Below are positions 30,554 through 57,800 of a DNA stretch of 64,000 nucleotides, piece after piece (the stretch's first letter is position 1; each line of letters starts with the position of its first letter). The notes under the pieces were generated by a model. It had not been told where the DNA came from. It worked only from the letters and a program-made list of their open reading frames with translations, and did not search any database. Origin of the DNA: Oculina patagonica (taxonomy: Eukaryota); contig NC_135759.1 in assembly GCF_052425735.1 (NCBI RefSeq), positions 35,030,001-35,094,000 of the forward strand, written 5' to 3'. Made by a program: the position numbers and the translations under genes.

Positions 30554-32636
30554 GATTAAATAAAAACTTTATTAACCAATTTCTAAAAGAATTACAATGA
30601 TTTGACTATTCGAATAAGAACTTTATATATAAACATATTATTTACATAATAATAAAAACAGTGTCTTTAAAAAATGTAGAAAAATAGTAAAAGCAACTTC
30701 GAGAGCAATAATAAAAGAAGAACTATATATTAAAAAAAAAATAATCGATCTAAATTGCAGTACGAGAATTCTCTACTTGAAAGTCCATATCATAAATGTC
30801 AATGTTCCTGTTTCTCTTTACAGTTCTTGATCCCCTTAAGCAGATTAAGGCGGATCGGAGGATCGCAAATGAGACTTTTGATCTGATCCAAGACACCGTT
30901 GTTGCGTAATCCTCCCCTTTCTTTGCGGCGATTAATTCTGCAAGCCTACTGTGATACCTCTTGCACTCCTCGCCCATTCCTCCGGTGGATGTAAACACCA
31001 ATGGAGTGAAAGTTCCCTGTTCTACTTGAAGAACCCTGTCTGCGTAAGCCCTCTTCTTCTCATTCTCATGGTTACGGTATATCTGCTTGGGGGTTTGGTC
31101 CTTGTAGGAATCCGCGTTGGGGTGACACACCCTCACATCAAAGAACGCGGATCTCTGCTTCTCCCAAAACCCCCGGGCATGTATATCTAGGCGAGCATCT
31201 GGCGTTGTGTTAGCGCCGCTTGGTAGCCTCTCTCCAGTCAGCTCTTGAAGGACGGGCTCTATTTCGACATCATTACAGACCATCTTAAGCAAGTCAGCCT
31301 CGAGGTCACGGAGTTCATTATGGCGCTGAATTATGAATCCGCCTCTCCTACAAATCATTGCATGATCGATTGTAAAGGCGTCACCGCACACGCACACTGT
31401 CGGCTTGTCGTCAATTTCCCAGTCGTACCTGAGCTTTACAGCATCTCGGAACTCGCCTTTATTCAGGTTGTAGCCCATGTCCTTTAATGGGAGGACCGTG
31501 AGCCAGTTAGAAGCACCTTTCTCGGTTGCGAGATCAATGGCTCGTTGTGTCTTCTGAGGTAGAGACTCCCTGACATTGCCAAGCCTAGTCTGAAGCGCTT
31601 CGTTGGTTTCTCTTCGCACGCACTGCTGTAGTGTCTTGACAGCAGTATCAGCCGGTGTTTCATGATCCTGTGCGATTATTTTCTCGACTAGGGGCGCTGT
31701 GATCTTGGTTGACACCTTGAATTGGGACGCTGCATCCTGGCTTGGATTAATAAGTCCAAGCCCCCCTAGCCGCACTGGAAGTGCCACTAGGTCCCTCTCT
31801 TCTTTTGTGCAGTGGTGATCAGTGATTGATGGTATTAGTACATCTGCAATAGCACGCTCCAGGGGCTCTAATAGATCTTCTATATCAGGAAGTGTTCTGA
31901 GAAAATATGTCCAGCGGTGGCGTAGTCCGAAGGTGAATGCCGCATAGCACGCCTGTGGGTTTGATGTGTCATACTCGGCTAGCTTTACCACCTGGCTCAC
32001 CCACTCCTCAACCTTTCCATCGACATACTCTTCGAGATAAGCTCGAGAGCCCAGAGCGGCGCCTAGATGTTTTTGTCCCTGCGTAGAGATGTTTATCGCA
32101 GTCCCCTCGAAGATAGCTTTAGCATGGTCCTTCTTGTCGGGTTTCGTAATAAGCCAGCACTTTTTGGCGTTAGGGTAGTACCCCAAATCAGGTCCTGCCT
32201 CAGTCAGCACATCCCACCATCGCTTGATATCTTCCAATGAACCTGCACCACTCGCGTCATCGGCAAACCAGCACTGCTTCAAATCGTTCGAAATCCCCAA
32301 ACGAGTAATCAGAGGTTGTAGACTGATGGCGTAAATTCCCATCGCTAGAGGATCTCCTTGCGTTGTACCCTCTGCAGACTTGATCTCCTTCCCTCCGATT
32401 ATGAATAATCTTGCTGGTTCTCGATACGTATTGATAGCGTACGTTGCAATAGGTGGGCAGAGTACTCTAATATTGTGGAGGGCAGCAGCTCTGTTTAGTG
32501 CATTGAATGCATTTGAGGCGTCAATCAGGAGTACAGCATCCGTCTCATCAGCTTCGAATATAGAGTGTATGGCGTGGACTGCGGCTTCGCTTCCACTCTT
32601 ATTAATTAATTATAATTATTTTAACTCTTATTAATT

Positions 32637-35600: not shown

Positions 35601-38600
35601 TTCTATAATCTTGTATAACTCATCTTGACTCTGCTGTGTTATCAGAACACTTTCGGCCGACGTTATACAACCACTAAAAATAAAGTTGAGATCAAGGTTT
35701 ACAACATGATAAATATATATTTTTTTTAAAATGTCTACAGAAGTAGAAGTTTGTCACAACAATAACCTTATAGTTAAGGTTCTCTATCCTTATTACATAC
35801 CTACAAGCCAAGCAGTCATTTAGTGTTATCTGTGCTCTTTGAAGTTTGGTCCTCTCTCCACCCTTGAAGTAAAAGATAACAGTCAGGCAGGCCTTTCGAA
35901 TTTAGTGCTAATTTTCAAACATAAAAAACCTTGTGCACATAAAAAAATGTTCTCCAACCATATAAAACCTTCCTCGGAGCCCCAGGGGCAGTTAATCCCG
36001 TTGTCCCGATAAGTTGCCCATTGCCCCCACTAACTGCCCCTGGGTCTCCGAGGATGTATAAAAACAGGCACCATTTTCTCTGATTTTTAGTTCTTAGCTT
36101 CTTTTGTCAGGAGGGGTTGCCTACAGTTGCCAATAATCAACAAGTGAATCAAATTAACATTTAAACTTTGAAAAATTCAAAACCTGGGCACTTTCTTTGT
36201 GTAGCAGACTATCACCTCTGTCAGTTGGGTAATAATGGAATTATAATTAGGTTCTCTGTCAGGCTATGGGTAGTTTATACTTGCTTCATTTTTTATCAAA
36301 TAATTGCAGGTCTATTTTCTTTTCAAGAAGTTGGTTTTTAAAGATTCCAAAACCGTCCACTGATAAATATTTTACATTGTAAGAAATAAGTGTTAGGGAA
36401 AGTTATTGCAGGACCACTTTATATTTATCTTCCATAATAAATAAATCTAGTAAATAATAAAGATGGTAAATTTTAAGCTCGGTGATAAATAATGAAGAAA
36501 TTGTTCAACATGACACGAGCGTGGGACAAAGAAAAAATCTGAGTCCCCGACGGGAATCGAACTCATGGCCTCCCAGATACCGGTTGGGCGCTCTAACCAA
36601 CTGAGCTACGAGAGACTCGTTGAGAGCTGGGCCATTTTACTAGGTTGATATGTGACACGCGTCCTGCATACTGCTAGGATCAGCAATGTCGAAATCATCA
36701 AGTCAGTGTCGAAATCATCAATTAAAATCATCTAGTAATCAAAGTCTCTTCGAGATACCGACTTTTTTTGCATGAAGTATGAGTCGAAGGTTTATCCTGT
36801 GCATTGTTCTTCGAACTTATCATTACGGTTGCTTTGTAGTTTAGTTTAACAATTTCCTATCTTCGCGGAGGAAATGCAGCCATATAATTTTGTCAAAAAT
36901 GGCTCGTCCGCGCCGGGTATTTATACACATATTCCTCAACATTACACAAATAAACAGTGCAAATTTCACCGAGATCTGACAATTCTATACTTTAAAATTG
37001 CAAGGACCTTTCGAGGCAGTCGATTACGGCAGCGAAATTAACAAATGAAACAGCAAAATATGCGTTCGACGCTTTGTTTTTGTGACGCCATATTTGAATT
37101 GTTATAGGTAGACCGCTGTTCAATGTGTTCAAGGCCGTATCGTTACGATTGCTCCACGAAAGAGCACGAAAAAAATACGGATATTTCCGACTACTGTCGG
37201 AGAAAACATTGCGTAAACAAATCGATACACTCAAGCTGCGTTTTTTCTGACTCGTCCCCAGTCGTCTTCATATAGCACGCGGCAATCTCTCCCTCCGCTG
37301 TATATTTGCCGCGTGCTGTATGAAGACGACTGGGGACGAGTCAGGCGTTTTTTCGCTCCCCGCCCCCACCCTCTTGCTTCTTCTGTTTTGTGCTGCGTCC
37401 AGGTCTCTCGCCGATCTCACCAAGCGCTCATCGATCGAAAAACACGAAAAATAGAGGGCTGTGGACAGTCTATGCGAGGGTCGGATATCAAGACAGCTTC
37501 TTCGTGGGCTTCAAAGAAGGATTAAACAAAAGCCATATATATACAGTGAATGCTATCGAATTATATTTGAAGATGAAATACGAAGGAATTTTGCTGTCTT
37601 TGACTGGAATTCCACTCGAACTGCGTAGATACGATCGCATGTTGTAAAGCCGATTCATGCAACATTGCTGTCAACGCGAGGTCACGTCCCTAACGACCTA
37701 GGCTGATGACGAAATAGAATGGGCGCTTGTAGCGACCAAATTTGGCCTAAAAAAGAAGCCTTAAAAGAAGCCCCCATCTCTTGCATTTGTTTTAACTTCA
37801 ATAATATCTTTGAAAAGAGCAAGTTTTTTGGTATGGTTTATTTTTGACGTTTGTAATTTTTAAACGATGTAAGTGCTAGTGGCTATTTATTTGTGTTTTA
37901 GTTACGCAATCCATTGTTTGTGCGACGCTTTTTATAGATCGCCTTTCAGACACACGTGCGTTGAGATAAGAAAGCTGACATGTCACTTTTAACATTGTTA
38001 TATAACGTTTGTAAATGTGACAAGTCACGTTTTTTCCACGAGATCGCGTGATCACCCACAGCGGAAAGTAATCCCTTGAGAAATTAAAATATTCCCTTGA
38101 GAAATTAAAAAAGTCCCTTGAGAGTAGACAAGAATGTTCCAAATTTTGCCCCACATAACTGCTATTCTCCTATTTTCGCTTGTAAACAAGCAAAAAAAGT
38201 CGCAAAAATGGTCCAGCTCTCAACGAGTCTCTCGTAGCTCAGTTGGTTAGAGCGCCCAACTGGTATCTGGGAGGCCATGGGTTCCCGTCGGGGACTCAGA
38301 TTTTTTCTTTGTCCCACGCTCGTGTCATGTTGAACAATTTCTTCATTAAATAAATCTATGTGCTCTTTTTACTACTGGTACATATCAAGGGATTCAGGGT
38401 TACCTCAGATAGCTGAACATAGCTTCCATCATCTTCAATCTTGATTTTTGCCAACTGTTCAGGATTATAAAAATAATAAATAAAAGTTTAAATATCATAT
38501 ACAGTGAAAACTCAATTTCTCAAGCCTCCATTTAAAGGGAACATAAAATCAAGAGTTCAATAAATCAGGGAACAGAATTACAGTGCTTGACTTAGTGAAG

Positions 38601-42890: not shown

Positions 42891-45800
42891 TCATCTGTTT
42901 AATGCCCAGATGAAGGTATCCGAGTCCGCAGATGAAGCCTTTCTGTGTGGTGACAGCTCCGAGAGACATGCTGCTATAGCGTTGGCAGCTTCGGAGTTGG
43001 ACATGGCCACAAGTGACAGATGGCCCTCGTGGCGTCTCAACAAACTGCAAGTCAAACAGAAATAATATAAATAAAGGTCAGCTTCGAGCCAAAGTGGCGC
43101 ATACTGCCGGAGCTTATCCCGGTTTCCTTAGCATTAAGCAGCTAGGAGTATTTCTACTCCCCCCTGGATGGGATGCTAGTCCATCGCAGGGTTACCCCCC
43201 AGCAGTAAATTCGCCGGTACCCATTTATACACCTGGGTGGAGAGAGGCACTATGAGAGTAAAGTGTCTTGCCCAGGAACACAACACAGTGACCCCGGCCA
43301 GGGCTCGAACCCGAAACGCTCGCTCCGGAGTCCGGCGCGCTAACCATTAGGCCACCGCGCCTCCTAGTCAAACAGAAAAACAAAACTTAAATATCTTTGT
43401 ATCGACGAGCAAAAAGGCCAGGAACAAAAGTCAATTGTTCTCAAGTCGTCCAATGAAACACTACAAAAGTTATATACTGTTTTGCAGTTAAAAAAGAGTT
43501 TCAACACACCCGTTCGTTCTACAATGTCCAAGATGGAAGTGGTAAACATACAATTTACATTAATTTTCCACTATTCAAGTAGCTTTCCGTTGCTACTTTT
43601 GTTGTTGCAGCGTTCAAGCAGGCACAAATGAAAATAAATAAGTTCGTCATAGTCTCAAGACCTATTTTCTAATCTTTCTAGTGTTTTTGTTTGGGAGAAA
43701 CTTGCTAGTGATCGTAACTCACCTTCTCGCTAAAGCTGAGTATTGTGCCACGTTTCTTAGAACCAGCGCCGCAGTTAATCGTACTGACTTTGTCAGCGGG
43801 GACTCCTCTTCGCCCTATCAAACAAACATCGCAGGTGTTACAGCAAGAAAAGACAAAATCTAATACACAAATTGTTTTATTATACGTTGTTTTTTGGACA
43901 AATCCAATAAAACTCATTTATTATTAATTTCATCATCATCATTAGGAAAATAACGATTAGCATAACGTTTCCAAAACTTCGTTCCTATGTTTTTCTTCGT
44001 TGTCTTCTTTGTCTATATTTTTGCTCTTTATTTGTCGTTGCTTTGATATCCTTTTTAACACGTTGTTATGCCGCCTATTAACAGAATCAAACAACAGTCT
44101 CGAACTGTTCTCTTACCTGTAATGACTGCAACATACGAGCTAAGAAATGATACGCTGGAACAAATGAAGCTGGCTGAGCCGAAGGAGGAGGAGCGGGAGG
44201 CTGGGATTGAGGAGGAGGAGGAGGAGGAGGAGGGGGTTGTACAGGAGGAGACTGGTGTTGAGCTGGCTGTGGAGGGAGAGGACTGGGAACTGGCGAAGGC
44301 TCACTGTGCTTTTGCTGGAATAAAAACGTCACCCGTTAGTTTTGACAATTCTTACTACTTTCGTTGGAGACTGAGTCTCAACTAAGGGTTAATGAAAATG
44401 ACCTTATTACACTAACAGTAGTACAGTGGAACCCCGATATAACGATATGCCAAGGGGGCAGTAAAATTATATCGTTATATCGAGGAATCGTTATATCGGG
44501 GCTCCGTCCCATACATTTTACTATTGCCGGGACATAACATATTCATCGTTATATCGGTAATATCATTATATCGAAGATCGTTATATCGGGGTTCCACTGT
44601 AAAACAAAATGAGAACTTCACGGTTTCGAAGAAATTTAAACAACCTTACATTTCACTAGAAGACTTCACACGCGAGACGAAACTTGCGTCAACACTCACT
44701 TTTCAGAGTTCTGATTATAAACGAGTTTGCTCTACACTAAGTCAGTGTTTGAAATAATGTCAACAAGCAGTGGAAGATAGCAAACAAATAACATAAGGTT
44801 AAGCTTACCTGCAGATGAAAGAGGAGGGAAGATCGTGAGCGGCGTACAGGGGCACAGCCTTCCCACATACACGACATAACCAGGCTGTCACGAGGAACAT
44901 GTTCAGTCACCACGTGCGCGAATAAACCTTTACTGGTGTCAAAAGAGCTGTACACAAAAAAAAACCACTTACAGTTACTATTTATCGACTGTAATTTACT
45001 TTTAGTGTTTACAAATGTCTTACTCCCAGACCAAGAGCGACACTGAGTTCGATGAACTCGGGTTTCTGTGTTGTGTTATCCCTTCTACCCTGGATAGGAT
45101 ACTAGTCCATTGCAGGATTTCCCTAACATGTTGTTACCTTTCCTTAACAATATGCTACTACGCATTTATAAAGCTGCGTGGAAAGGCATTAAGACAGTGA
45201 AGTCTTAGTAACCCAAGAACACAACACAAAGTCATTAATGCATAAACCATTACAATAGATCAAAGGTAAAGATACCTACAACTGGGGGCGGATTAGGAGG
45301 GGGCAAGCAGGCTGCACCCCCCCCCCTCCCATTTTTTTTTCCTCCAATGCCTTAACTTTTGATGAAAAATGCTCGCAGCATGCTGTAAGCAACATCGACA
45401 CGAACTTCAATTTTTCATTGGTTGCATTCTTGGCGCCCTCTTTCTGAGTTTTCTGGATCCGCCCCTCCCACAATCATTTGTAAAGGTGATTTTTGCCAGA
45501 CAACGACCTTCAGATGCTGGCATACTTTTGTTGATTAAACAAGTACATATGTTGTAAGAGTACATTACCTGTAGCAAGTGTTCCATCGACATCTGTAAGG
45601 TTTAAATGATACTGGCACTGCTGACTCCACTAAAGGACTACCCTGTGCTGGTGGAGTGGAGGGAAACTCCTGTGAGCCACTTGGATTCACGGGCATGGTC
45701 ACTACTGGGTTATGGACGACATTCTTAGCACCTGGAGGAAGAGCGGGATGTTGATACTGCATCGTCACAGGTGTTTGTCTAGTCTGAGGTCCAGAAGCAG

Positions 45801-48800
45801 CCTCGAACATGGCTGCACCTGGATTGGCTACACTTTGAGTTCTTATGTCTGGATAAGCATTCACAGATTTCGATGCCTGTTGTATCTGAGGCTGCCAACC
45901 AGAGGGTAAACTCGTGCTTTGAGCCACTGCTGGCCCAGGAGATGTTTGGGATCCTGGTGGAAGGTTGTGCCGCACTCCTGCTTGAAAACCAGCAGGACCA
46001 GCCTTCTGCGGCACAGGCTGCGCCCTGGGACCAGCATGTTGTGCTAAAGGCTGTTGCTGAAGTCCACTCGGAGCCCATCCAGGTTGCATTCCAGCATTCA
46101 TTCTTGGTAAGGGCATTTGAGTTGAGGGTACTTGCTGCCCTCCATGAAAAGGAGGTGATGCTGACAAAGATTGTTGAAGACCTGCTCCTTGACTGCCAGG
46201 AATCATACTATTTACAAAATCTGGACCTTGAGGTCTGGGTAATATATTTTTAGGTACCCCAGAGGGATGCATTGTAGCTGAAGAGTCATGAGCGGTAATC
46301 ATTTGTGGCTGTGGACTGGGCTGAATATTTCGATGTGCCGGAATTGTTGGTTTTTGCACAGAAGCTTGAAGATTCTTATTCTCCACATTAACATTGTGCA
46401 TCGGTAATCTATTCCCTACATTTGGTGGTAGATTCCCTTGTTGTGGAAAGAAGGGCATCTTCTGTTGAACCTCAGGTCCAACACGTTGACCAAAGCCAGC
46501 TCTAGACACTTGAGTTACATTGTTCGTAGAATTCCAAGCTGCATTTACGGCGACTGGCTGTCTACTGGCCGTTACATTGTATTGGCCAGGTAAGGGGTCT
46601 GGTCTAACTGCAGGAGGAATTGGAATTTTGCCTTGTTGCTCTGCAACTCCAACAGAAATGCCTTTTTCGTTTGATGTATTCCCACCTTCATTGAAAGATC
46701 CCCCAGGAAATGCGGGCATCTTGGATGGCATTGGGTGAGTTCCCTCAGTGCCATTCTCCATTGGGTCAATCCTCAGATCTCCCTGCAAAACGTCACTAAA
46801 CAGACCTGTATCCGTGTCACTTTCTTCCAGATATTTACCGAAATCCGAGTTCGTTTCACTTCCAAACAGATCAGGCGATGATGCCTTACTGCTGCTGAGT
46901 CTCTCGCCATCAGACGCAAGAAGGTCAAGTTCGGATGTATCAATTCCGCAAACGCCATTCAGAGGCAGATGCAGATCTTTATCCAAAAGTTTATCCATGA
47001 GCTTATTTCTTGGGTCTCCCTTGATGTCACCGTTAACAAGAGGGGTTGGACTACCAGTTCTTGAGGGTATTGACGAAGAATTATCTAGTTCATTTTCCAG
47101 CGAGGACATTCTACTGTCAAGCCTTGGCCTCTTTGCTGGTCCGCACTCTTCACTAACACTATCTCGTCGACCATTTAGGTTTCCCTCATTTGACGTAGAA
47201 ATTTTACTTCCATGTGTCATCTGTGCATTTAAGTCTCTTTTCAAAGTACCGTTACTAGAGGTGTGTAACGTTGTGTTAGGTGCATTCTGTAAAGAGTTTT
47301 TCTCACCTTCATTCAACGATTGTCTTCCCAATGCCTGCTCAAAATGTTCGCCAGTGTTTGATCTGCATATTTCACCTCTGGCAACTAATGCACTAACAGC
47401 CAAAGTTTTGTTTTCTGATAGACTTATTTGTTGGTTCGTTGCAACATCATGCGCTAGCTGAGCGTGCTGAGTAGTAGTGGAGCTAGTTTCATCTCCTTTT
47501 GTAGAGATTTCTGTCCTATTTTTGTTTTCTACCACTAGAATTTTTTGCTCCTCTGCGCCGTCTAAAAGACCCGTTGAAACAACATCTGCTGCTCGCTCTT
47601 CCTGCGCTATGAGGACAACACCTTCCTGTCTACTCCTGCCAGAAAAGGAAATAGTAGGTGTCTCAGTATTACTTACTCCAGAAAAGCTTCTCGTCATCAA
47701 ACATTCGCATTTTCACAGTATTTTAAATCACAAAAATTGGATCCCAGTGACGTAGATAAAAGAAGCCATGATGACGCAAGTTAATATGAAAGACTTTTAT
47801 GCCAATACACATCAAATAAACTGAAAGTCCCTTTTTCAATCATTGTTATTTTCTTTAAAAAACGAGTACAGGTCATACATTTTTTCGGGGAGGCATTACT
47901 TTCAAGGGGGGGGGGGTCACTTTTGGAATTCTACGGTATTACAAATGAATCAAATCGCTGGACCTGTAGAAATTCACTAAATCAATGTTACAGTGTGCAT
48001 ACACGTGTAATAAATTATACTCTTCCCAGAACAAATATTTGTTTCTCAGGTAAACCTTATTTTACAAAAACTAAATAAAATACTTACCCAAGGAAAGCAT
48101 CTCTGCTTGGTTTTCTGCTATCCTGTCCCAGTCCTGGTCTGATATTTCTTCCTCCAAGTCCACCAGGTGAATCTGGTTGAGAACTGACAAATGGTTGTGC
48201 ACTCCCTGTGGAGGTGACAAGAAGTGGTGAAGGTGGTGTGTTGGGAACAGGTACATGTGGCTGGAAGTTCTGCCTTGGGGGTTCCCCTCGCTGAAGTGGA
48301 GATCTTGGTACCTGCTGGGTGCTAGCATAGCTCCCAGCAGCAACAGCGTTTGAAGGAAGTTGTTTCCTTGCCTGGTTTTCCTGAGTAAACTGCACATTCA
48401 TTCCAGGTGCAGGCTTAGGAGCTAGAGGTGGGTAAGATGAAAGAGATGTGTGCCGCCCACTGTATGCAGGTGGTGAAGGTCGCATGTTCTGCTGCTGAGG
48501 AAAAGGAGGAGCTGGCTGTCGATAAGCAGCTGTCGGTCGATACGATGATGGTTCTGCAGGTGAAAGAGGTCTTGGCATGAATTGAGGTGGTGTCTGAGCT
48601 GGTCGAGGCATGTTTGGCAGTACAGGCCGTGGAGGTTGAAGTGGAGATCTTGTTAGTGGGCTTTGCGGAGAACGAACATTACCTGGCAAACCAACAGGGG
48701 CAGGCTGGGGAGACTTTGCCACCAGCTGAGGAGGAAACGTGCCAGAGGTTCCTCTATGACCTGGAGAAGCTGGTATAGTTTGTGGCATGCGGTGGCCAGT

Positions 48801-51800
48801 TTGCTGTGAAGGCTCCGCCCTTGGAGGACCAGGACTTTGAGGAGATAGTGGCATTCTTTGCATGACCTGACCTTGGTTATGATGATATTGGAAGGCTTGT
48901 GGATTTTGACCTTGCAATGTGCTGACTCCCTCGACACTTGCTCTGCGCATGGCTGCTAATCTCTCAAGAGATTGCCCTTTGTCCGTTGGCCCAACGTTCC
49001 TTTGCATTTGTCCACCCATCATTTGTCTGTGATCAACAGGAGCTTGGAGGTCTTGCTGTTGCATTGACGCAGCAGGAAACTGCCTAACTCCCTGATCAAA
49101 TGTAGAAAAAAACGAAAATTAGTCAGTCAGTAACAGAAGTTATCAATCACATGCCTAAAAAAGACAGAATACTGATGACAAAGTTGTTGTAGAAAAACTA
49201 AAAACCAGAGTACTCAAAGATGTGTTATTTCAGGGATCATTTTAATCACCGATGGCTTCTAGCTGTTTGCTTTTGGTAGCAACACAAAATATCAGTATTA
49301 GATATTGAATATAATCAAAAACACAAAGATTAAAACGTTGAACCTACTGTCAAAAAGTCACGTTTTCAAATGAAAATAAGGTCAATGGGTCGATAAAATG
49401 TTATACTTTGTTGCCAACACCTTTGTTTTCAGTGTTTTCATTTAACAGGAACACTTTGTATTAGCTTACGTTTTCTATTAGCTTACATGGTATGGTCACG
49501 CACCTGATCCGAATTTGCCTGAATGGTTCCCTGACCAGGAATGCTTGGTCTCCTCGGTAGTCGACCCATTCCTGGCATCTGCTGAGGATTACCACCGGAA
49601 ACCTGTGCCATGGATCTCTGATCATATGGTCTTGGCATGGTTGGGGAAGGTGTTTGCTGTGAAACTGCCATGTTCTGTTGTTTGGGAGTATTCCACACAG
49701 GGGGCCCTTGATTTTGGGCAGGTGGAGTAGGCGTTCTACTGATACTCTGTTGGCCAGGGGACATTCTCTGCTGAGCTGTAGGATGGGAACTAGCAGCACC
49801 AGGCTGCTGAGATGCTGGTGAATCTGTGCGGCTTTTCACTGGAAGGGGGCTGGACCTTCTTTTTAATCCAGCTAGTACATACTGTACATTAACCCCAGAC
49901 TGCACCCTTCGAAGCTGGCCATCAGGAAAAGCTAACCTGTGAGGAAAAACAGTTTGATGTAAGCATTTTCAGAAATGTTCTTAACTAACTGTAAAAAGAA
50001 ATTTAGTTGCTTTGCCTTTGTATTTGACCTCTTTTATGTAACAATTCAAATCTTTGTATTCACTCAAAATGACCACAACTCCATGTCCCTTAGTACTTAC
50101 TTGATTATGCGATTGAACGCTGTTGCATTGAGGATTCCTACTCTTGCCAATCTACTACAGGAAGACAGGTAGTCGGCATATATGTCAATGCGGGATACAG
50201 AACTTCCAGCAGAAGGCTCGTAAGTTGCTTGGAGCCTGCAACAAAAATGAATTATGTTAGCAACTGCACAAATTCTAAAAACACCATTCAAAGTTTAAAC
50301 AATATTGCACTTTTAGGCCTGTATAGTCAGAACTGGTAAGTCATATCAGCTAGGTTTGATAAAACCTGACTTAGTTCAAACAACCACATCCGTGGGACAT
50401 TTTTGTACCTTCTTCTCATGACAAAGAATTCTCCTGAATCCTCACAAACTCAAATCACAAGCTAGCAACTTGATGGTTAACGTTCTTTCTGTGTTTATTT
50501 TCTTAATTTGCCACTCTGGCTCTAAACTGTGATTAAGTTTAAGATTCATGTGCTGAAACACGTATTAAACCATAAGCTCCCGTGGGTGCACCATAAGACA
50601 GCTGTCATTACTCACACTTCCATTTTTTCCTTAAGGGCCCATTACAGTATCTCGTTGCCAAGCTACGCGGTTGCCACGCAAGTGCAATTTTATTTCCGGT
50701 TTTCTCAGCTTAGCGGCAAAATTTTACGCGAGTTTAGTTCCCATTTAGCTTTCGGTTAGAATCATATTCCAATCACGGAAATTTGTTCTACAGCAACAGA
50801 AACTGGGTAAATTGAAATAAAAAAAAGGTTTGTCACTGTAAATGATTTCAAAACATATACGAAGCCCGGGCCTGAAGCAAGTATCCGAAACCGCCGAAAT
50901 ATTTTTCAAAGTAGTGCCGATGCGTTAGAAAATATGCGAATGTGCGCATGTGTCCCCGAATGTGTCCCCTTCAGCTCACTGAAGAAATCTGTGAAAGCTA
51001 CTGGCAAAAATTAAAGCACTGTCACTAGAACTAAACGAAGCTCAGAAAAAAAAACAGCGATTCATTTCGTTCGCGAAATGAAGGTAAGATAATTTTTACG
51101 CACGCAGAAATATAGGAATGAACTCGATTTATCTGCCGTAAATTTCTTGCAGAAACTACTGATTAAGATTCGTACAGCAGTCTAACCACAGGACAAATTC
51201 AGTAAGGTACAAAACTGCGAAAACTGAACTATATAAAACACCTGTATAAAAACATTTCAGCTTACAAACGTTAACAATTCATTCAACCGAACTATGAATT
51301 GAAGCCTTCTTGCTCAAAACACGATAACGCCGTTTACGCTAATTCGCAAATTACAAGCCAAAAATAAAGAAACTCACACTAAACTCTTTTTAATACTTAC
51401 GACCGCCGTTGTTTACATTTGTCTTAGCCTCTACATGTTAGTTGAGCGACAGTAAACGTTAATAAAGCTGTCCGAATACAAGCAAGAAGTAAAGTTTGCC
51501 GTGTCGAAAAATTATAGTTTTTGAAGCGTACGTGAGCGGGGGGAAAGCCAACTTAGTGCAGCAATGTCAATTACGATGATTTCAACCAATCATTCACCGT
51601 ATAATTTTACTTCCGGTACGGACAAAAATGCGAGTTTTTCTCGGAAGGAAAAAAACATACCTTCTGTTTTTTGCAGTAAATCGAAAGAAAATACATTTTT
51701 CTTTAAACGTAAGCATGCGTTTTCGGAAAATCAAAACAACATTAAAGTTGTGTTCAAAAACGTGGTCAAAAGAACACATTTTCTTTAGTTATTTTTCAAG

Positions 51801-54800
51801 TTTTTGTGCTAACGGAAAACGCATGCTTACATTTTTTAAGATAAAAGTACTGATTGACATAATGCTACAAACTATGAATGAGACCGTAAATTTCTTGCGT
51901 AAAACTCAGTTTTTTGTTCTGGGTCACGTGACATTAGACGTGCACCGATGACGTCATCAACAGACTTGCAGTCGTACTCTAAAAGTCCTGTCTAAATTTG
52001 GTTAAATAAAAGCAGAGATAAATTAAGTTACAGCCAATTGAAATCTCCCTAGCAACGGCCCCAAAAGATACTGTAATGGGCCCTTAAATACAGTTAAAGT
52101 ATGCAACAGTTAAATGCAGCAGAATGAGCCAGTAGACTTACCAGTTATATGTGAATGTCTCTGGGTCAATTTCACTTCCTGTTGTCTTGATGGGAACTGG
52201 AGTAGGGGAAGGACTGGGCACTGGACCAGGTGATGGGCTGGAAGGTGGGACGTGGTGTGGTTGAACTGGTTCCTTGGGTTGTTGTGGAACAACTGTAACA
52301 AGAACACCAACACTTTATATTTAAGCTTGTTATATGACAAAAGAGAAGGCACATGCCCCCAAAAAGTTTGTCTTTATATAATTACACCGGCTTCAGTGTT
52401 ACGTGCATAGCTATATCTTTCTACATCCAACTTTCAACATCATCTTTCGAAGTGCGGTTGATATGATCAAAAACAATGCATACCAGTGTTGGTTTCAAGC
52501 AAATGAGCCCACAAGTTCAGAAGGTCATGCTAGTGGGCTGTGATTGGCAAATTTAGATCTGTCTTGTTTGTTTAGCACATCGAAAGATGGATGTTGATAG
52601 AAAGCCACTTTGCACGTAACACAGAAAGTAGGTGAAATTTCATGTTTGTTAATAAGAAAACACTTTCAGTATAGCGAATAACATCAACGTAATAACCTGG
52701 AGTTGGAACTGGTTGTGGTTTTTGTGTTGCTGGTATGGCAGTTGGTGTTCTCTTCTCCAAGATCTGCACCTCAGATAAGGCTTCTGGGCCAAAAGACTCT
52801 GCATCCAATGTCACCAAGCACACCAGAACATCTACAAATAAGGACACCTCTTCTGATAAGATTTGCTAAATCCTTAAGTTTAACAACAGTCTAGAACTCC
52901 TAACATCTTTGCAAATCAAACTGTAATGGCAAATCAAAAAGTGGTTCAAAAGTATCCCACGGCAAGTTTCAAAAGTTTGGGTAATTGTGAAGAACAGCTC
53001 CCGCTAACCGACTGTCGGTCGTCTGTCGGTCGTCTGTCGGCCGACAAACGGCCGACTGTCGGCCGTTTGTTGGCCGTCTGTCGGCCGTCTGTTGGCCGTT
53101 TGTCGGCCAACAGACGGTCGTCTGTCGGCCGACAACCTGCCGACAGGTTTTGGCTATGATGTCGGCCAACTGTCGGCCGACAGCCGGCCGACAGGCGGTG
53201 ATCTGTCGGTAAGGTGTCGGTAAGATGTCGGTAAGATGTCGGTAAGTTGTCGGTTATACGGTAACACTAACCTTTTTGTTTCTTTATGTTTTTCCTCCGT
53301 AAAGGACCCCAAAATTTATGAGAAATTGAAAGGAAAGGTATATATTCCTGAGTTTCGGTTATCACAGCCGAAAACTAGCTTCTGCGTTGCCGAAATCGAC
53401 CGGAGAATTTACGCGAACACAGCTACTCCATTTATCTCCGCCATATTGGATTGGTTAACTTAGTCTCATTCCCCCTCGGATTTTTATACAATTTTCGTTT
53501 CATGTGACGTATCGCAAGTATCTTTTCTTATGTTTCATGTAGTGTATTAATGTTTGTTATCATAAATTAACTTTATTGTTGGTCATTTACTTTTATAGAC
53601 TTGGTGGCTCCTAAAGGAGCCGTTTTTGACGAAGTGAAGTCAAACTTCACTCGTAGAAGCGCTGATCAAATTTCAGCGGCAGTAGTTTCCCCTCTCTTCG
53701 CATGTTTTCCATCACTGGAATGAACCTGCGAAGCCGTCTTCTGCACAGTGTCTCAAGTTGTTTCACGGAAGCCACTTGCTGGTCACGCAGGACAAGGTCT
53801 AACTCTCTGGCGTCGACCTTCTTAAGTTCGGCGATTGCAACAAAGTCTCTGACAGTGCTCCTGGGGCAGCTGGCCAGTCGAAAGGCGCACGCCATACTGC
53901 ATCGGTTTTCCATCATGACGTTCATGACCTGGTCATAGCGCTCGTGGATGCTGGCCAAGCTGTGGGTACTGACACGACTGCCATTTCTTTGCTGGTGCTG
54001 CTGCTGCTGTTCGGTGGGCGGCTCTTCTCTCTCCGGCTGGTCGTTCTGTTTCAGCTGTTCGACCTCCGCTCGTAGTTCGTGGATGACTTTCTTGGCGTTG
54101 ACGAGGCGCCGCTCGAGGTTTTTGACGACCTCGTCTTTCGTTCTTATGATGTTCGCTAGCTCCTCCGCCTCACTCTCCCTCTCCTGAAGCTCTTGTGCCA
54201 GTTCCTGGTTCTGCTCTTTCTGGTTCTGGAATGCCAGCCCGACCCTGTCATGGTCTTTCAGCAGGGCCTCGTACTTCTTTTGCAGTTCGTCATACGAGCG
54301 TTGAGGGTTGGATGACGCAGACTTCGCTGTCTTCTTTCTTTTCTGGGTTGGGCGCACCGTACACGAACACTGACGGTTGTCGCCGTTACAAACACCACAC
54401 CTTTTTTCACACTGTAACATGGCGTGGGCGCCGCCGCACACAGTACACTTTCGAGTTCTCTGAGACATTGCGAGTCGTAATGATAGAGACCGTTTAAACT
54501 CAAGGTTTTTTATACTCTGTTAAATGGATCAAGTAAACAATAACAATTTGTTGATTGGTTTATTAACAACGCATGTTATTGGTCGAGTTTGATTACTTGT
54601 GTCTATTTTGCATATGAATACTTTTCCATTACAATAAGTTACTTCTCATTGGTTAATTTCGATCCGATCAGAGGTTTTATAAAGGTTGTTGAAAGAGTGA
54701 ATAAACTCATTTCATCATGAACCACTTCGAGATACTTACCTTGATCCATAGTTGCCACGCAGTGCTCACGTTCCTTGTCGATCGTGGCTTACTGGCGGCT

Positions 54801-57800
54801 AGGCGTAGGTGCTCTTGTGGAAACGATATGGTTCTACGAAGTGATAATTCTGATGACGGATATCACTGGGAATGCCCAGTAAACCAATGCAGAAAACGAA
54901 GATCAATTCGCGCTGGTTCTTTTTTCCAAGATTCCAAGATTCCTCTGCATCGCTGGCTGTACATCATCTGGCTGTGGTCGATCGACGAATCCAACAAAAA
55001 AGTTTCCCTGCTAACCGGATTGTCACTCCGTACGGTGGTCAAGGTACTTGAAAGTCTCAGAGACATCTGCACCGAGAAAATTCTACAAGGAAACATTAAA
55101 CTGGGCGGCCGTGGAAAGACTGTAGAGATCGACGAATCCATGTTTGGCCACAAACGCAAGTACAACCGCGGGCGAATCGGTAGAGGCACCTGGGTCTTCG
55201 GCATGGTTGAAAGAGGCACTGGCAGAGCTCTTGCGTTCCGAGTACCCAACAGAACAAGAGAAACTCTGGTAACTGGACTGGTACAGCAATTCGTCGAGCC
55301 TGGAACGCTGATAATTTCTGACAAGTTTTCACCATACTTCAACCTGAACAGTATCGGCTACGTCCACCTCATGGTTAACCATTCTGAGAACTTTGTTGAC
55401 CCTTACACTGGAGCCCACTCGAACACGATTGAAGGAGTATGGAGTCAGATTAAAAGGAAACTGAAGGCGATGAACGGCACTCAGAGAGAGAGAATTCCTG
55501 GATACCTGGATGAGTTCAACTGGCGAAAATGTTTCCCAGGCGATCCTTTCGACAACGTGTTAGCTGGCATTGCTGAGTTCTATCCTCCAAACTAAGTTCA
55601 CTTAGTTTGATGAAAAAAAAACGGCTCCTTTAGGAGCCACCAAATAAATGAAAGTCTTGACCAACGTGTGTGATATGTTTGTTGTTAACGGGAATAAGGG
55701 TGGCACGCGTCTAAATCAATTATCACAGCACGCGCTAAATCAATTATCAAATTACACTGTATTGCGTATAGAAATTAGAAAAACGTAATTCAATAGGCGT
55801 CCGTGTAACATTTCCTTTTTTACATATAAATTCTGAAGAGAAATGAAACTATTTACGCTGCAACCTGCAATGCAAACAGAGAAAAAAGTTAAAAGGTAAA
55901 CATTATTTACTCTTACATGACATACATGTACCATGAAGGGGTCGCAAAGGATTCTAGGGCGACTTCAGCGAGTGCGTGTGTGGAGAAGTTTTTGCACTGT
56001 TTTGGCCTGAGTTTTGGATAAAATCATCTTCGAACGTGATTTCATTGCTTGCCTTATGCACTTAAAGCTACGTAGGTGATAGATTTATAAAAGATTGAAG
56101 TTTGTATAAAAGAAAATCTTGACGAGGAGTCGATTTGTTTTGTAGTAAGTACCGTAGTACAATGAAATACAATGTTTGTAAGTCCTATCTGTTTTAATCG
56201 CTTTCTGCGTCGGGCTTACTTCTGTGTTTACTGCTCAGTTTTACAGTAAAATGTCTGTTTTGGGAAGCTGTCGGTAACCTGTCGGTGGGCTGTCGGTGCC
56301 CTGTCGGTAGTGTGTTGGTAACCTGTCGGCCGACAGTCGACCGACAGTCGGTTAGCGGGAGCTGTTCTTCACAATCACCAAAGTTTGGATACAAATGAGC
56401 AATTCCAGTATGTCAAGATATAAACAAGTAATGTGTGTTTTGCACCATTTCAGTTGATATAATCAACCTTTTTATTACATACCAATACTGTGATGAACCT
56501 CTGCAATGTGATCTGAGGTGACTTGGCCAACTCCTGACAGATTGTACAGTGATTCCAATGAAGACAGTACCAACTAAAACAAAGGACAAGTTCTCTAACA
56601 TGGAACATTGTACAACAAAGGCAAACTAATACTTGCTGAACAAAATCGACATAGCAAGGTAGTGATGTGGAGAGCAACAACCACTGTTCCCCTCCCCCCT
56701 CACACCCTAAAATACAGCATTACTAGTACAGTCAACTCTCGCCTTGCGGCCCCCGCTTTCGGCCCCCTTTCGGCCTTTCCCCGGTTTTACTTGCCTTCCC
56801 CGGTCCTAGTAGATCCTTAATTACCTGAACATCACTGACAATTAGTACTTTGATGAGTGACTTGTATGCTTCAGGTTCCAGGCCGGATTCTATGACTTCA
56901 TCATTTCCTTCTAGAGTGCACAGCTTGCCCAACACATCCATGGCTGATAACAGCACAGAAAAAAGAGAACATTAGAGCTTGAATAAAAAGACATAAGCAC
57001 CAGAGAAACTGTCCTTACCTTAAACTGCTTGAAACCATAAATGTGCTCACGTGGTGTATAGTGTAAAATTAAGTTTCCTTTCGGCAGGTTAATATTTTAA
57101 TTCTCCGAAGAGGTAGGTCTGAGATAATTTTTAGCAGAACATTTGTGGTGCACAATACAGAGATCCACATACACGTAATGAGTCTGGTTGGTTTACCGTA
57201 TTTATTTGAATAAACGCTGCAGGGTTTATTAAATTTTTCGTGATTCAAGTGCGGCGTTTATTCGAGGGCGGTGTTTATTTAAACTCGATTTATTTCTTGC
57301 AAACAATAGCATTGTTACTGAACATTTGAACTTTAAAAAACAGAAACATGTAGTGCTTGTTTCCAAAATCATTTTCAAAATCTTAAAACATTGTTACAAT
57401 CAAGGAAAATTATTATTTTAGGCTTGCTCAAACTTGATAGTAACTGCATTTGCTTATTGAGTCTATTATTCAAAGTAAATGCCACATCGCGATGCGAAGT
57501 TTATTTGAGGGTTCCCCCGGCACTTTATTTATATTTCTGCTCTAAAATGCGGCATTTATGTTGAGCGAGGTGTTTAATCGAATAAGTATGGTAATTAAAG
57601 TAATTACTAATCAGAAGCAACCCAAATCTGAAGCTGCATTAACAGGCAAGAACGTTTGTCTCAAATCTCTATCATCTACCTTGAAAGTGAAGGATGTTAG
57701 GTTTCCGAAGATAGCTGTCTAGTTTCTCAGACCACAGATTACTTTGAATATGAATTATGCTCTATTTCAACTAACCATTGATGACATGATAACGATCTTT

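Follow-up and report, generated by a model that had tools for sequence, protein, structure and literature searches.

How cut-and-paste transposons time their activity so as to gain copies is an old question, and most of the answers available so far were obtained in bacteria and maize. In bacteria, IS10/Tn10 and Tn5 couple transposition to replication via Dam hemimethylation, and in maize the Ac/Ds elements move after replication. Here we describe a two-gene DNA transposon in a 64,000-nucleotide stretch of the stony coral Oculina patagonica (contig NC_135759.1; this whole stretch is called the window below), in which the spacer between the genes and the 3' ends of both carry motifs of the host histone genes.

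The closest described elements are those of the Merlin superfamily, kin to bacterial IS1016/IS1595 (Feschotte 2004, as cited in PMC8101967). Their terminal inverted repeats (TIRs) measure 24-462 bp with a conserved terminal 5'-GG, and their target-site duplication (TSD) is 8 or 9 bp long (PMC8101967). On the host side, expression of those Hydractinia histone genes that carry a 3' stem-loop and a downstream element is limited to S phase in this cnidarian (PMC5011920).

The unit at 52980-56379 of the window (3,400 bp) encloses two open reading frames (ORFs) and the 248-bp spacer between them, and it is a Merlin-superfamily DNA transposon by the published definition, having an IS1595-type DDE transposase, GG termini and a TSD within 8-9 bp (PMC8101967). 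It shares with the superfamily a DDE_Tnp_IS1595 transposase of about 290 aa, TIRs that start with GG, an 8-bp TSD and the presence of multiple copies in animal genomes including Cnidaria. It differs from the superfamily in adding a divergent second gene, here called ORF2, and a histone-type cassette made of promoter, stem-loop and downstream element; the words promoter and histone are absent from the text of PMC8101967. What is new here is the combination, in one Merlin transposon, of a second gene and a histone-type expression cassette. Our literature search found no paper linking transposases to histone stem-loops or histone promoters, and a 2026 review of histone gene organisation made no mention of histone-type cassettes in transposons. 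We consider it likely that the spacer is a compact two-way RNA polymerase II promoter of this transposon, built from cis-elements of the host H2B-H2A kind, which would give both genes histone-type expression in S phase.

Promoter motifs in the spacer between two divergent genes

Both ORFs were intact and lay head-to-head across the spacer (Table 1). A reading made earlier from the letters of the window, called here the sequence-only reading, had described GATCC-TATA-TCATT modules in both directions, three CCAAT boxes and an octamer-like TTTTGCAT, and all of them were present where it had placed them. On the plus side, GATCC (54661-54665) was separated by 12 nt from TATAAA, the A of TCATT (54709) was base 32 when the first T of TATA is taken as base 1, and the ATG at 54717 gave a predicted leader of about 8 nt. 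On the minus side, the gap between GATCC and TATAAA was 11 nt, the A of TCATT (54480) was the 35th base from the first T of TATA, and the ATG at 54468 gave a predicted leader of about 12 nt. Each of the three CCAAT boxes, the last of which lies at 54648-54652, reads ATTGG on the plus strand, and TTTTGCAT matches 7 of the 8 bases of the octamer ATTTGCAT. A scan of the region for promoters and terminators of the bacterial type was set aside as uninformative for a eukaryote.

We then asked how rare these arrangements are. GATCC-N8-14-TATAAA had exactly two matches on both strands of the window, both in the spacer and pointing outward, while shuffled sequences gave an expectation of 0.27. When the fetched loci were added to the window (621 kb), the pattern matched 12 times: nine times in spacers of the element family, once in an Oculina H2B promoter, and once each in two contigs described below (L088 and L108). 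The composite ATTGG-N4-TTTYGATCC was found 17 times on both strands of 612 kb, seven times upstream of the element transposase, ten times upstream of coral H2A and nowhere else. Across more than 600 kb, both the module and the composite were thus confined to histone-type contexts or to the element family.

Comparison with coral H2B-H2A spacers

The comparators were the histone cluster of Oculina patagonica (L128, from GCA_052425735.1), a metagenome contig (L121) and clusters from ENA coral assemblies (L130-L137). L121, which encodes H1, H2B and H2A by Pfam, was found when metagenome contigs were scanned with a degenerate stem-loop pattern; a search with its H2B led to coral histones, and these led to L128 and nine ENA coral clusters, of which seven belong to the assembly that also contains the element copy L007. 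The scan pattern was a degenerate version of the window's own histone-type stem-loop, for which the Rfam alignment served as a guide; the fourth stem pair of the histone stem-loop varies, which also helped to shape it. A scan of viral contigs for the stem-loop returned two bacterial or phage-like matches, which were irrelevant.

When the host spacers (323-382 bp) were read from H2B to H2A, their motifs ran in the order ATG, TATA on the minus strand, GGATC, ATTGG, an octamer in some, ATTGG-N4-TTTYGATCC, a TATA-like box on the plus strand, and ATG. The element spacer, read from ORF2 to the transposase, showed the identical order. In both sets the CCAAT boxes had a single orientation. The octamer was perfect (ATTTGCAT) in the Oculina spacer, was present in L121 and was missing from the L130 group. 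In the Oculina H2B promoter the module had the form GATCC-N14-TATAAA, and about 31 nt separated its TATA box from a TCATTC cap region. The likeness to an H2A/H2B intergenic region that the sequence-only reading had proposed was therefore borne out by comparison with coral spacers, in outward GATCC-TATA modules, one-orientation CCAAT boxes, an octamer in some cases and a composite at the same relative place.

The composite was the best-conserved block of the host alignment, which covers three host lineages, and also of the alignment of element copies. The best-conserved footprints of the element set and of the host set, each identified independently, are thus one and the same motif. It reads ATTGGTGCATTTCGATCC in Oculina and ATTGGTTAATTTCGATCC in the element of the window. 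TTTYGATCC was additionally seen on the H2B side of the Oculina spacer and in the Oculina H3-H4 spacer. If the reading proposed here holds, TTTYGATCC and its CCAAT composite would be defined as conserved coral histone promoter elements.

Taken as a whole, the element and the coral H2A-H2B pair are alike in having two intronless genes placed head-to-head across a few hundred bp, an outward TATA box after GATCC on each side, CCAAT boxes in one orientation, a central octamer in some members, the composite on one side only and a TCATT(C) cap region. They are unlike in that the element encodes a transposase and a CCDC106-like protein and no histone, and in that its unit is dispersed and lies inside transposon terminal repeats. 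The element spacer is also shorter (248 bp versus 323-382 bp), its TATA boxes are closer to consensus, and there is no extended sequence homology beyond the motif blocks.

Histone-type 3' end signals of both genes

Both element genes are followed by a histone-type 3' end signal, whose stem-loop begins 20-30 nt past the stop codon (Table 1). The score of the transposase stem-loop (33.4 bits) lies just below the gathering score of RF00032, which is 34. The 16-nt stem-loop was identical in both element genes and in the Oculina H2A, H2B, H3 and H4 genes, and the AAC and ACCA flanks were also the same. Further downstream, a purine-rich block (AAAGT..ATGAyCAA) stood at the same distance from the stem-loop in the element and in the host histone genes, with similar sequence. 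The sequence-only reading had spoken of histone-pathway mimicry, and these host-matching stem-loops and downstream elements of both genes back that view.

The stem-loop was retained in element copies down to 52% protein identity. In L007, the stem-loop variant after the transposase is the one carried by H2A of that host, and the variant after ORF2 is the one carried by its H2B, which is weak evidence resting on a one-base difference. The ORF2 and transposase 3' signals of the window form a 39-nt inverted repeat with each other (I12).

Conservation and variation among element copies

Seven copies or relatives were fetched (L001-L004, L007, L138 and L139), and six spacers were aligned. Copies with different flanks came from Stylophora, three ENA coral assemblies and one Joint Genome Institute (JGI) sample. 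The transposase ORF was intact in all six copies compared, with synonymous divergence (dS) between 0.19 and more than 3 and a ratio of nonsynonymous to synonymous divergence (dN/dS) of 0.07-0.20. ORF2 was lost or degraded in some copies: L001 carried one internal deletion, and the ORF2 of L002 was not intact.

The most conserved block of the aligned spacers consisted of ATTGG, four variable bases, TTTY and GATCCGA. Since the composite was invariant in six copies while synonymous sites were near saturation or saturated, it is conserved beyond neutral expectation. On the transposase side, the window element, L004, L007 and L003 agreed within one base in the distance from the ATG to TATA (-39/-40) and to GATCC (-56/-57). 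In L002, GATCC stood at -60, the composite was more distant from the ATG by 3-4 bases, and TATA was not matched. On the ORF2 side, GATCC-N9-11-TATAAA was kept in L004, L002 and L003.

Two further observations concern single copies. L007 carries a tandem duplication of about 130 bp of its transposase-side promoter module (L007:3172-3500), with two composites and two TATA boxes. In Stylophora pistillata (LSMT01000008.1; L001:4001-18275), gene models of 398 and 706 aa merge the transposase with a neighbouring caspase-type (Peptidase_C14) gene, and these merged models are probably an annotation artefact of the inserted element.

A number of results weigh against histone-type control. The start sites, the 3' ends, the lack of poly(A) and the restriction to S phase are all predictions. 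Local alignment of the element spacer with host spacers, judged against 300 dinucleotide shuffles, reached z = 2.6-5.5 at best in the matching orientation; most values stayed under 3, and flipping the spacer brought z to about 0. Shared k-mers and the longest common substring did not clearly exceed the background of 243 window tiles, and for the H2A-H2B spacers the k-mer sharing lay within it. On the H2A-type side, GATCC and TATA were 12 nt apart in the element versus 20-21 nt in the hosts, and the predicted leaders of 8 and 12 nt are far shorter than the host's. The octamer was not conserved among copies, being perfect (ATTTGCAT) in L003, degenerate in L004 and L002, and missing with its region in L001 and L007. 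L007 was also without GATCC on the ORF2 side, and the 52%-identical relative L139, which has no ORF2, kept the stem-loop (38.7 bits) and lacked the composite. The Logan contig L138 (SRR3694372, 1136 nt), the only one that might be transcript-like, stops 3 nt past the transposase stem, at the point expected for the end of a mature histone-type mRNA. It was rejected as transcript evidence, as it includes promoter DNA, beginning 215 nt before the ATG, and its library may have been either RNA or DNA; our literature search found no mention of the run.

The strongest competing explanation is a working bidirectional promoter of the generic TATA and CCAAT kind, which would carry no cell-cycle information and leave the 3' stem-loops as the only link to the histone pathway. 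TATA and CCAAT boxes are indeed common promoter parts, and the weak whole-spacer likeness, the variable octamer and a spacing and leaders unlike those of host H2A fit such a promoter, but the composite and the GATCC-TATA module would not then be expected to be restricted to histone-type contexts across more than 600 kb, nor would the motifs be invariant across copies with saturated synonymous sites. We regard this explanation as unlikely.

Proposed mechanism and origin of the cassette

Under the preferred reading, a histone-type two-way promoter, the transcription factors of the host's histone genes would act on both transposon genes, and the SLBP/U7 small nuclear ribonucleoprotein (snRNP) machinery would process the 3' ends of both mRNAs. 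As a result, the two proteins would be synthesised jointly, from mRNAs that are short-lived and lack poly(A), and only while dividing cells are in S phase. In this way the supply of a cut-and-paste transposase would be tied to DNA replication, a time at which a sister copy is present. The predicted outcome, transposase activity limited to the time of replication, is the same as for IS10/Tn10, Tn5 and Ac/Ds. The proposed means is different, as the histone expression pathway would act on the synthesis and stability of the transposase mRNA, in place of methylation acting on the transposon ends. If true, this would be a simple eukaryotic solution to the timing question, namely the borrowing of a host pathway strictly tied to DNA replication, and a rare example of the SLBP/U7 3'-end pathway serving genes other than those for histones.

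The sequence-only reading had gone further and suggested that the cassette may descend from a histone gene pair. Motif order and gene positions fit this idea, with ORF2 in the place of H2B and the transposase in that of H2A, and descent from an H2B-H2A pair is plausible in view of this collinearity. A claim of descent would need alignable homology along the whole spacer, and because the likeness is limited to motif blocks, the descent is unproven. A recent wholesale copy of a host spacer is not claimed, as both the whole-spacer alignment and the k-mer sharing were too weak for it.

Anatomy of the transposon

The coordinates of the element are collected in Table 1. Its TIR arms (inverted repeat I1) span 80 nt and are 83% complementary, and the element termini are common to the copies L002 and L004, whose flanks differ. 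Inside the termini lie subterminal repeats of 11 bp in tandem, which share a TGTCGG core and are in part palindromic, about 25 on the left (52997-53265) and about 9 on the right (56246-56352). These repeats are probable transposase binding sites. The repeat array also yields spurious ORFs, and microRNA-like Rfam matches at 53004-53200, all below threshold, were rejected as an artefact of its palindromic repeats. A second copy of the element was not found within the window.

Table 1. Coordinates of the transposon, its genes and its predicted control signals (positions in the window)
Feature	Position	Strand	Basis
Left target-site duplication, 8 bp, AAAGTTTG	52972..52979		Identical 8-mer directly flanks both termini
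Left TIR, start GGTAATTG, with subterminal 11-bp repeat array	52980..53265	+	Inverted repeat I1, direct-repeat families D1/D2
ORF2 3' end signal: stem-loop 53621-53606, ACCA, downstream element AAAAGT..ATGACCAAC	53578..53626	-	Rfam RF00032, 35.7 bits (gathering score 34)
ORF2, 273 aa, H2B position of cassette	53647..54468	-	Intact ORF
Bidirectional promoter spacer (predicted), 248 bp	54469..54716		Motif layout between divergent ORFs
ORF2-side core promoter: GATCC 54530-54526, TATAAA 54514-54509, TCATT initiator-like 54482-54478	54478..54530	-	Motif scan
Upstream region: ATTGG 54554-54558 and 54578-54582, octamer-like TTTTGCAT 54606-54613	54554..54613		Motif scan
Composite ATTGG-N4-TTTCGATCC, transposase side (H2A-type)	54648..54665	+	Composite scan, conservation
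Transposase-side TATAAA 54678-54683, TCATT initiator-like 54707-54711	54678..54711	+	Motif scan
Transposase, IS1595/Merlin type, 292 aa, H2A position of cassette	54717..55595	+	Pfam DDE_Tnp_IS1595
Transposase 3' end signal: stem-loop 55623-55638, ACCA, downstream element ATGAAAGTC..GACCAAC	55618..55665	+	Rfam RF00032, 33.4 bits, E = 5.4e-7
Right subterminal 11-bp repeats and right TIR, reverse complement start GGTGATTG	56246..56379	-	Repeat analysis, comparison of termini
Right target-site duplication, 8 bp, AAAGTTTG	56380..56387		Identical 8-mer at other terminus

This anatomy bears on a second explanation, that the locus is a domesticated, transposase-derived host gene pair which is no longer mobile and stands under histone-type control for some host function in S phase. 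Such a pair would have both ORFs intact and under purifying selection, as they are here, and relatives annotated as ordinary proteins, as NCBI lists them. The TIRs and the 8-bp target duplication at the ends, the copies in different flanks and in several genera, the loss or degradation of ORF2 in L001 and L002, and the existence of hundreds of protein clusters, many of them fragmentary, all speak against it, and we find it very improbable. Least credible of all is a chance resemblance, or a remnant of a host histone locus hit by a transposon insertion and without any role for the element: it would fit the high frequency of short AT-rich motifs and the background level of the k-mer sharing with host spacers, but the terminal repeats enclose the entire cassette, which accompanies the element from genus to genus, its motifs are conserved beyond neutral expectation, and the observed counts are far above those expected by chance.

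The two genes and their relatives

The transposase matched Pfam DDE_Tnp_IS1595 (PF12762) with E = 1.5e-27 and 96.9 bits (cut-off 27), over positions 5-151 of the 153 profile positions, and its N-terminus carries a Cys-rich stretch. More than 1000 relatives of it were found, and the named ones were all from stony corals. The ORF2 product combines a long coiled coil with a Cys-rich N-terminus and with a helical domain, also conserved, at the C-terminus, and its 173 relatives were likewise in stony corals. The named relatives of the two proteins came from Stylophora, Oculina, Acropora, Montipora, Pocillopora and Porites, and one ORF2 relative in Oculina patagonica was 99% identical.

Pfam CCDC106 was matched by 12 of 25 aligned ORF2 relatives, and we refer to the ORF2 product as a CCDC106-like coiled-coil protein on the strength of this domain match in its relatives. 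An AlphaFold2 model of ORF2 had a predicted local distance difference test score (pLDDT) of 77.7, and a Foldseek search with it gave no match below E = 0.5; the ORF2 profile likewise found nothing significant among PDB sequences, where the hits were coiled-coil noise. CCDC106 is a vertebrate protein family, which may itself derive from a transposon accessory gene; our literature search found no paper tying CCDC106 to transposon accessory genes. PIF/Harbinger-type two-gene transposons, which encode a transposase and a DNA-binding partner, are similar to the element in being cut-and-paste elements with a second conserved protein that probably acts together with the transposase. They differ from the element in their transposase family, and the partner proteins are unrelated.

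Histone signals at other transposon-type ORFs

About 20 contigs carried the coral-type stem-loop, and only two of them were histone genes. Many matches to the histone stem-loop in coral genomes belong to transposons and not to histone genes, which is a warning for annotation. Tc1/mariner-like ORFs (Pfam DDE_3, HTH_Tnp_Tc3_2) in the metagenome contigs L014, L020, L022, L037, L104 and L124 had a coral-type stem-loop about 30-80 nt downstream, with Rfam scores of 31-37 bits. They fall into three lineages with 45-72% mutual identity. In the Tc1-like contig L022, no clear second gene or terminal repeats were found.

A FLYWCH zinc-finger ORF (L088:643-1280, minus strand) had TTTTGATCC-N9-TATAAA directly upstream and a histone stem-loop downstream. 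In L108:1096-3619, a FLYWCH-like stretch was found together with an unrelated 152-aa ORF that bears the stem-loop (the same ORF occurs in L072) and with a GATCC-TATA module further upstream. The arrangement of L088 and L108 may represent another multi-gene element.

Canonical, non-coral histone stem-loops were also seen after transposon-type ORFs. In L105:459-1858 (plus strand), one follows a PIF/Harbinger-type transposase (DDE_Tnp_4), and in L065, L080, L052 and L055 they follow IS1595-type or Tc1-like ORFs, with distant IS1595-type ones in L065 and L080. These cases suggest that the association of transposons with the stem-loop reaches other animal hosts. L041:1286-1382 contains two divergent TTTTTGATCCG-N20-TATAAA modules about 100 bp apart, and the contig also carries a canonical histone stem-loop.

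Stem-loops thus accompany Merlin, Tc1/mariner-like, PIF/Harbinger and FLYWCH-associated ORFs, and promoter modules accompany Merlin and L088. We tentatively raise the possibility, which we would not yet call probable, that takeover of the histone cassette is a strategy that recurs among the cut-and-paste DNA transposons of stony corals and of further marine invertebrates, in which transposase would be made only in S phase via SLBP/U7 and the Merlin cassette would have come from an H2B-H2A pair.

Other features of the window

Weak matches to the tRNA model, with scores of 30.8-35.8 bits, were found at 1612-1684 (plus), 36546-36612 (minus) and 38231-38292 (plus) of the window. Three long ORFs on the minus strand had no Pfam family: 30750-32342 (530 aa), 45565-47700 (711 aa) and 48084-49064 (326 aa). 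The G+C content of the region at about 44-50 kb was 0.44-0.46, which is higher than elsewhere in the window.

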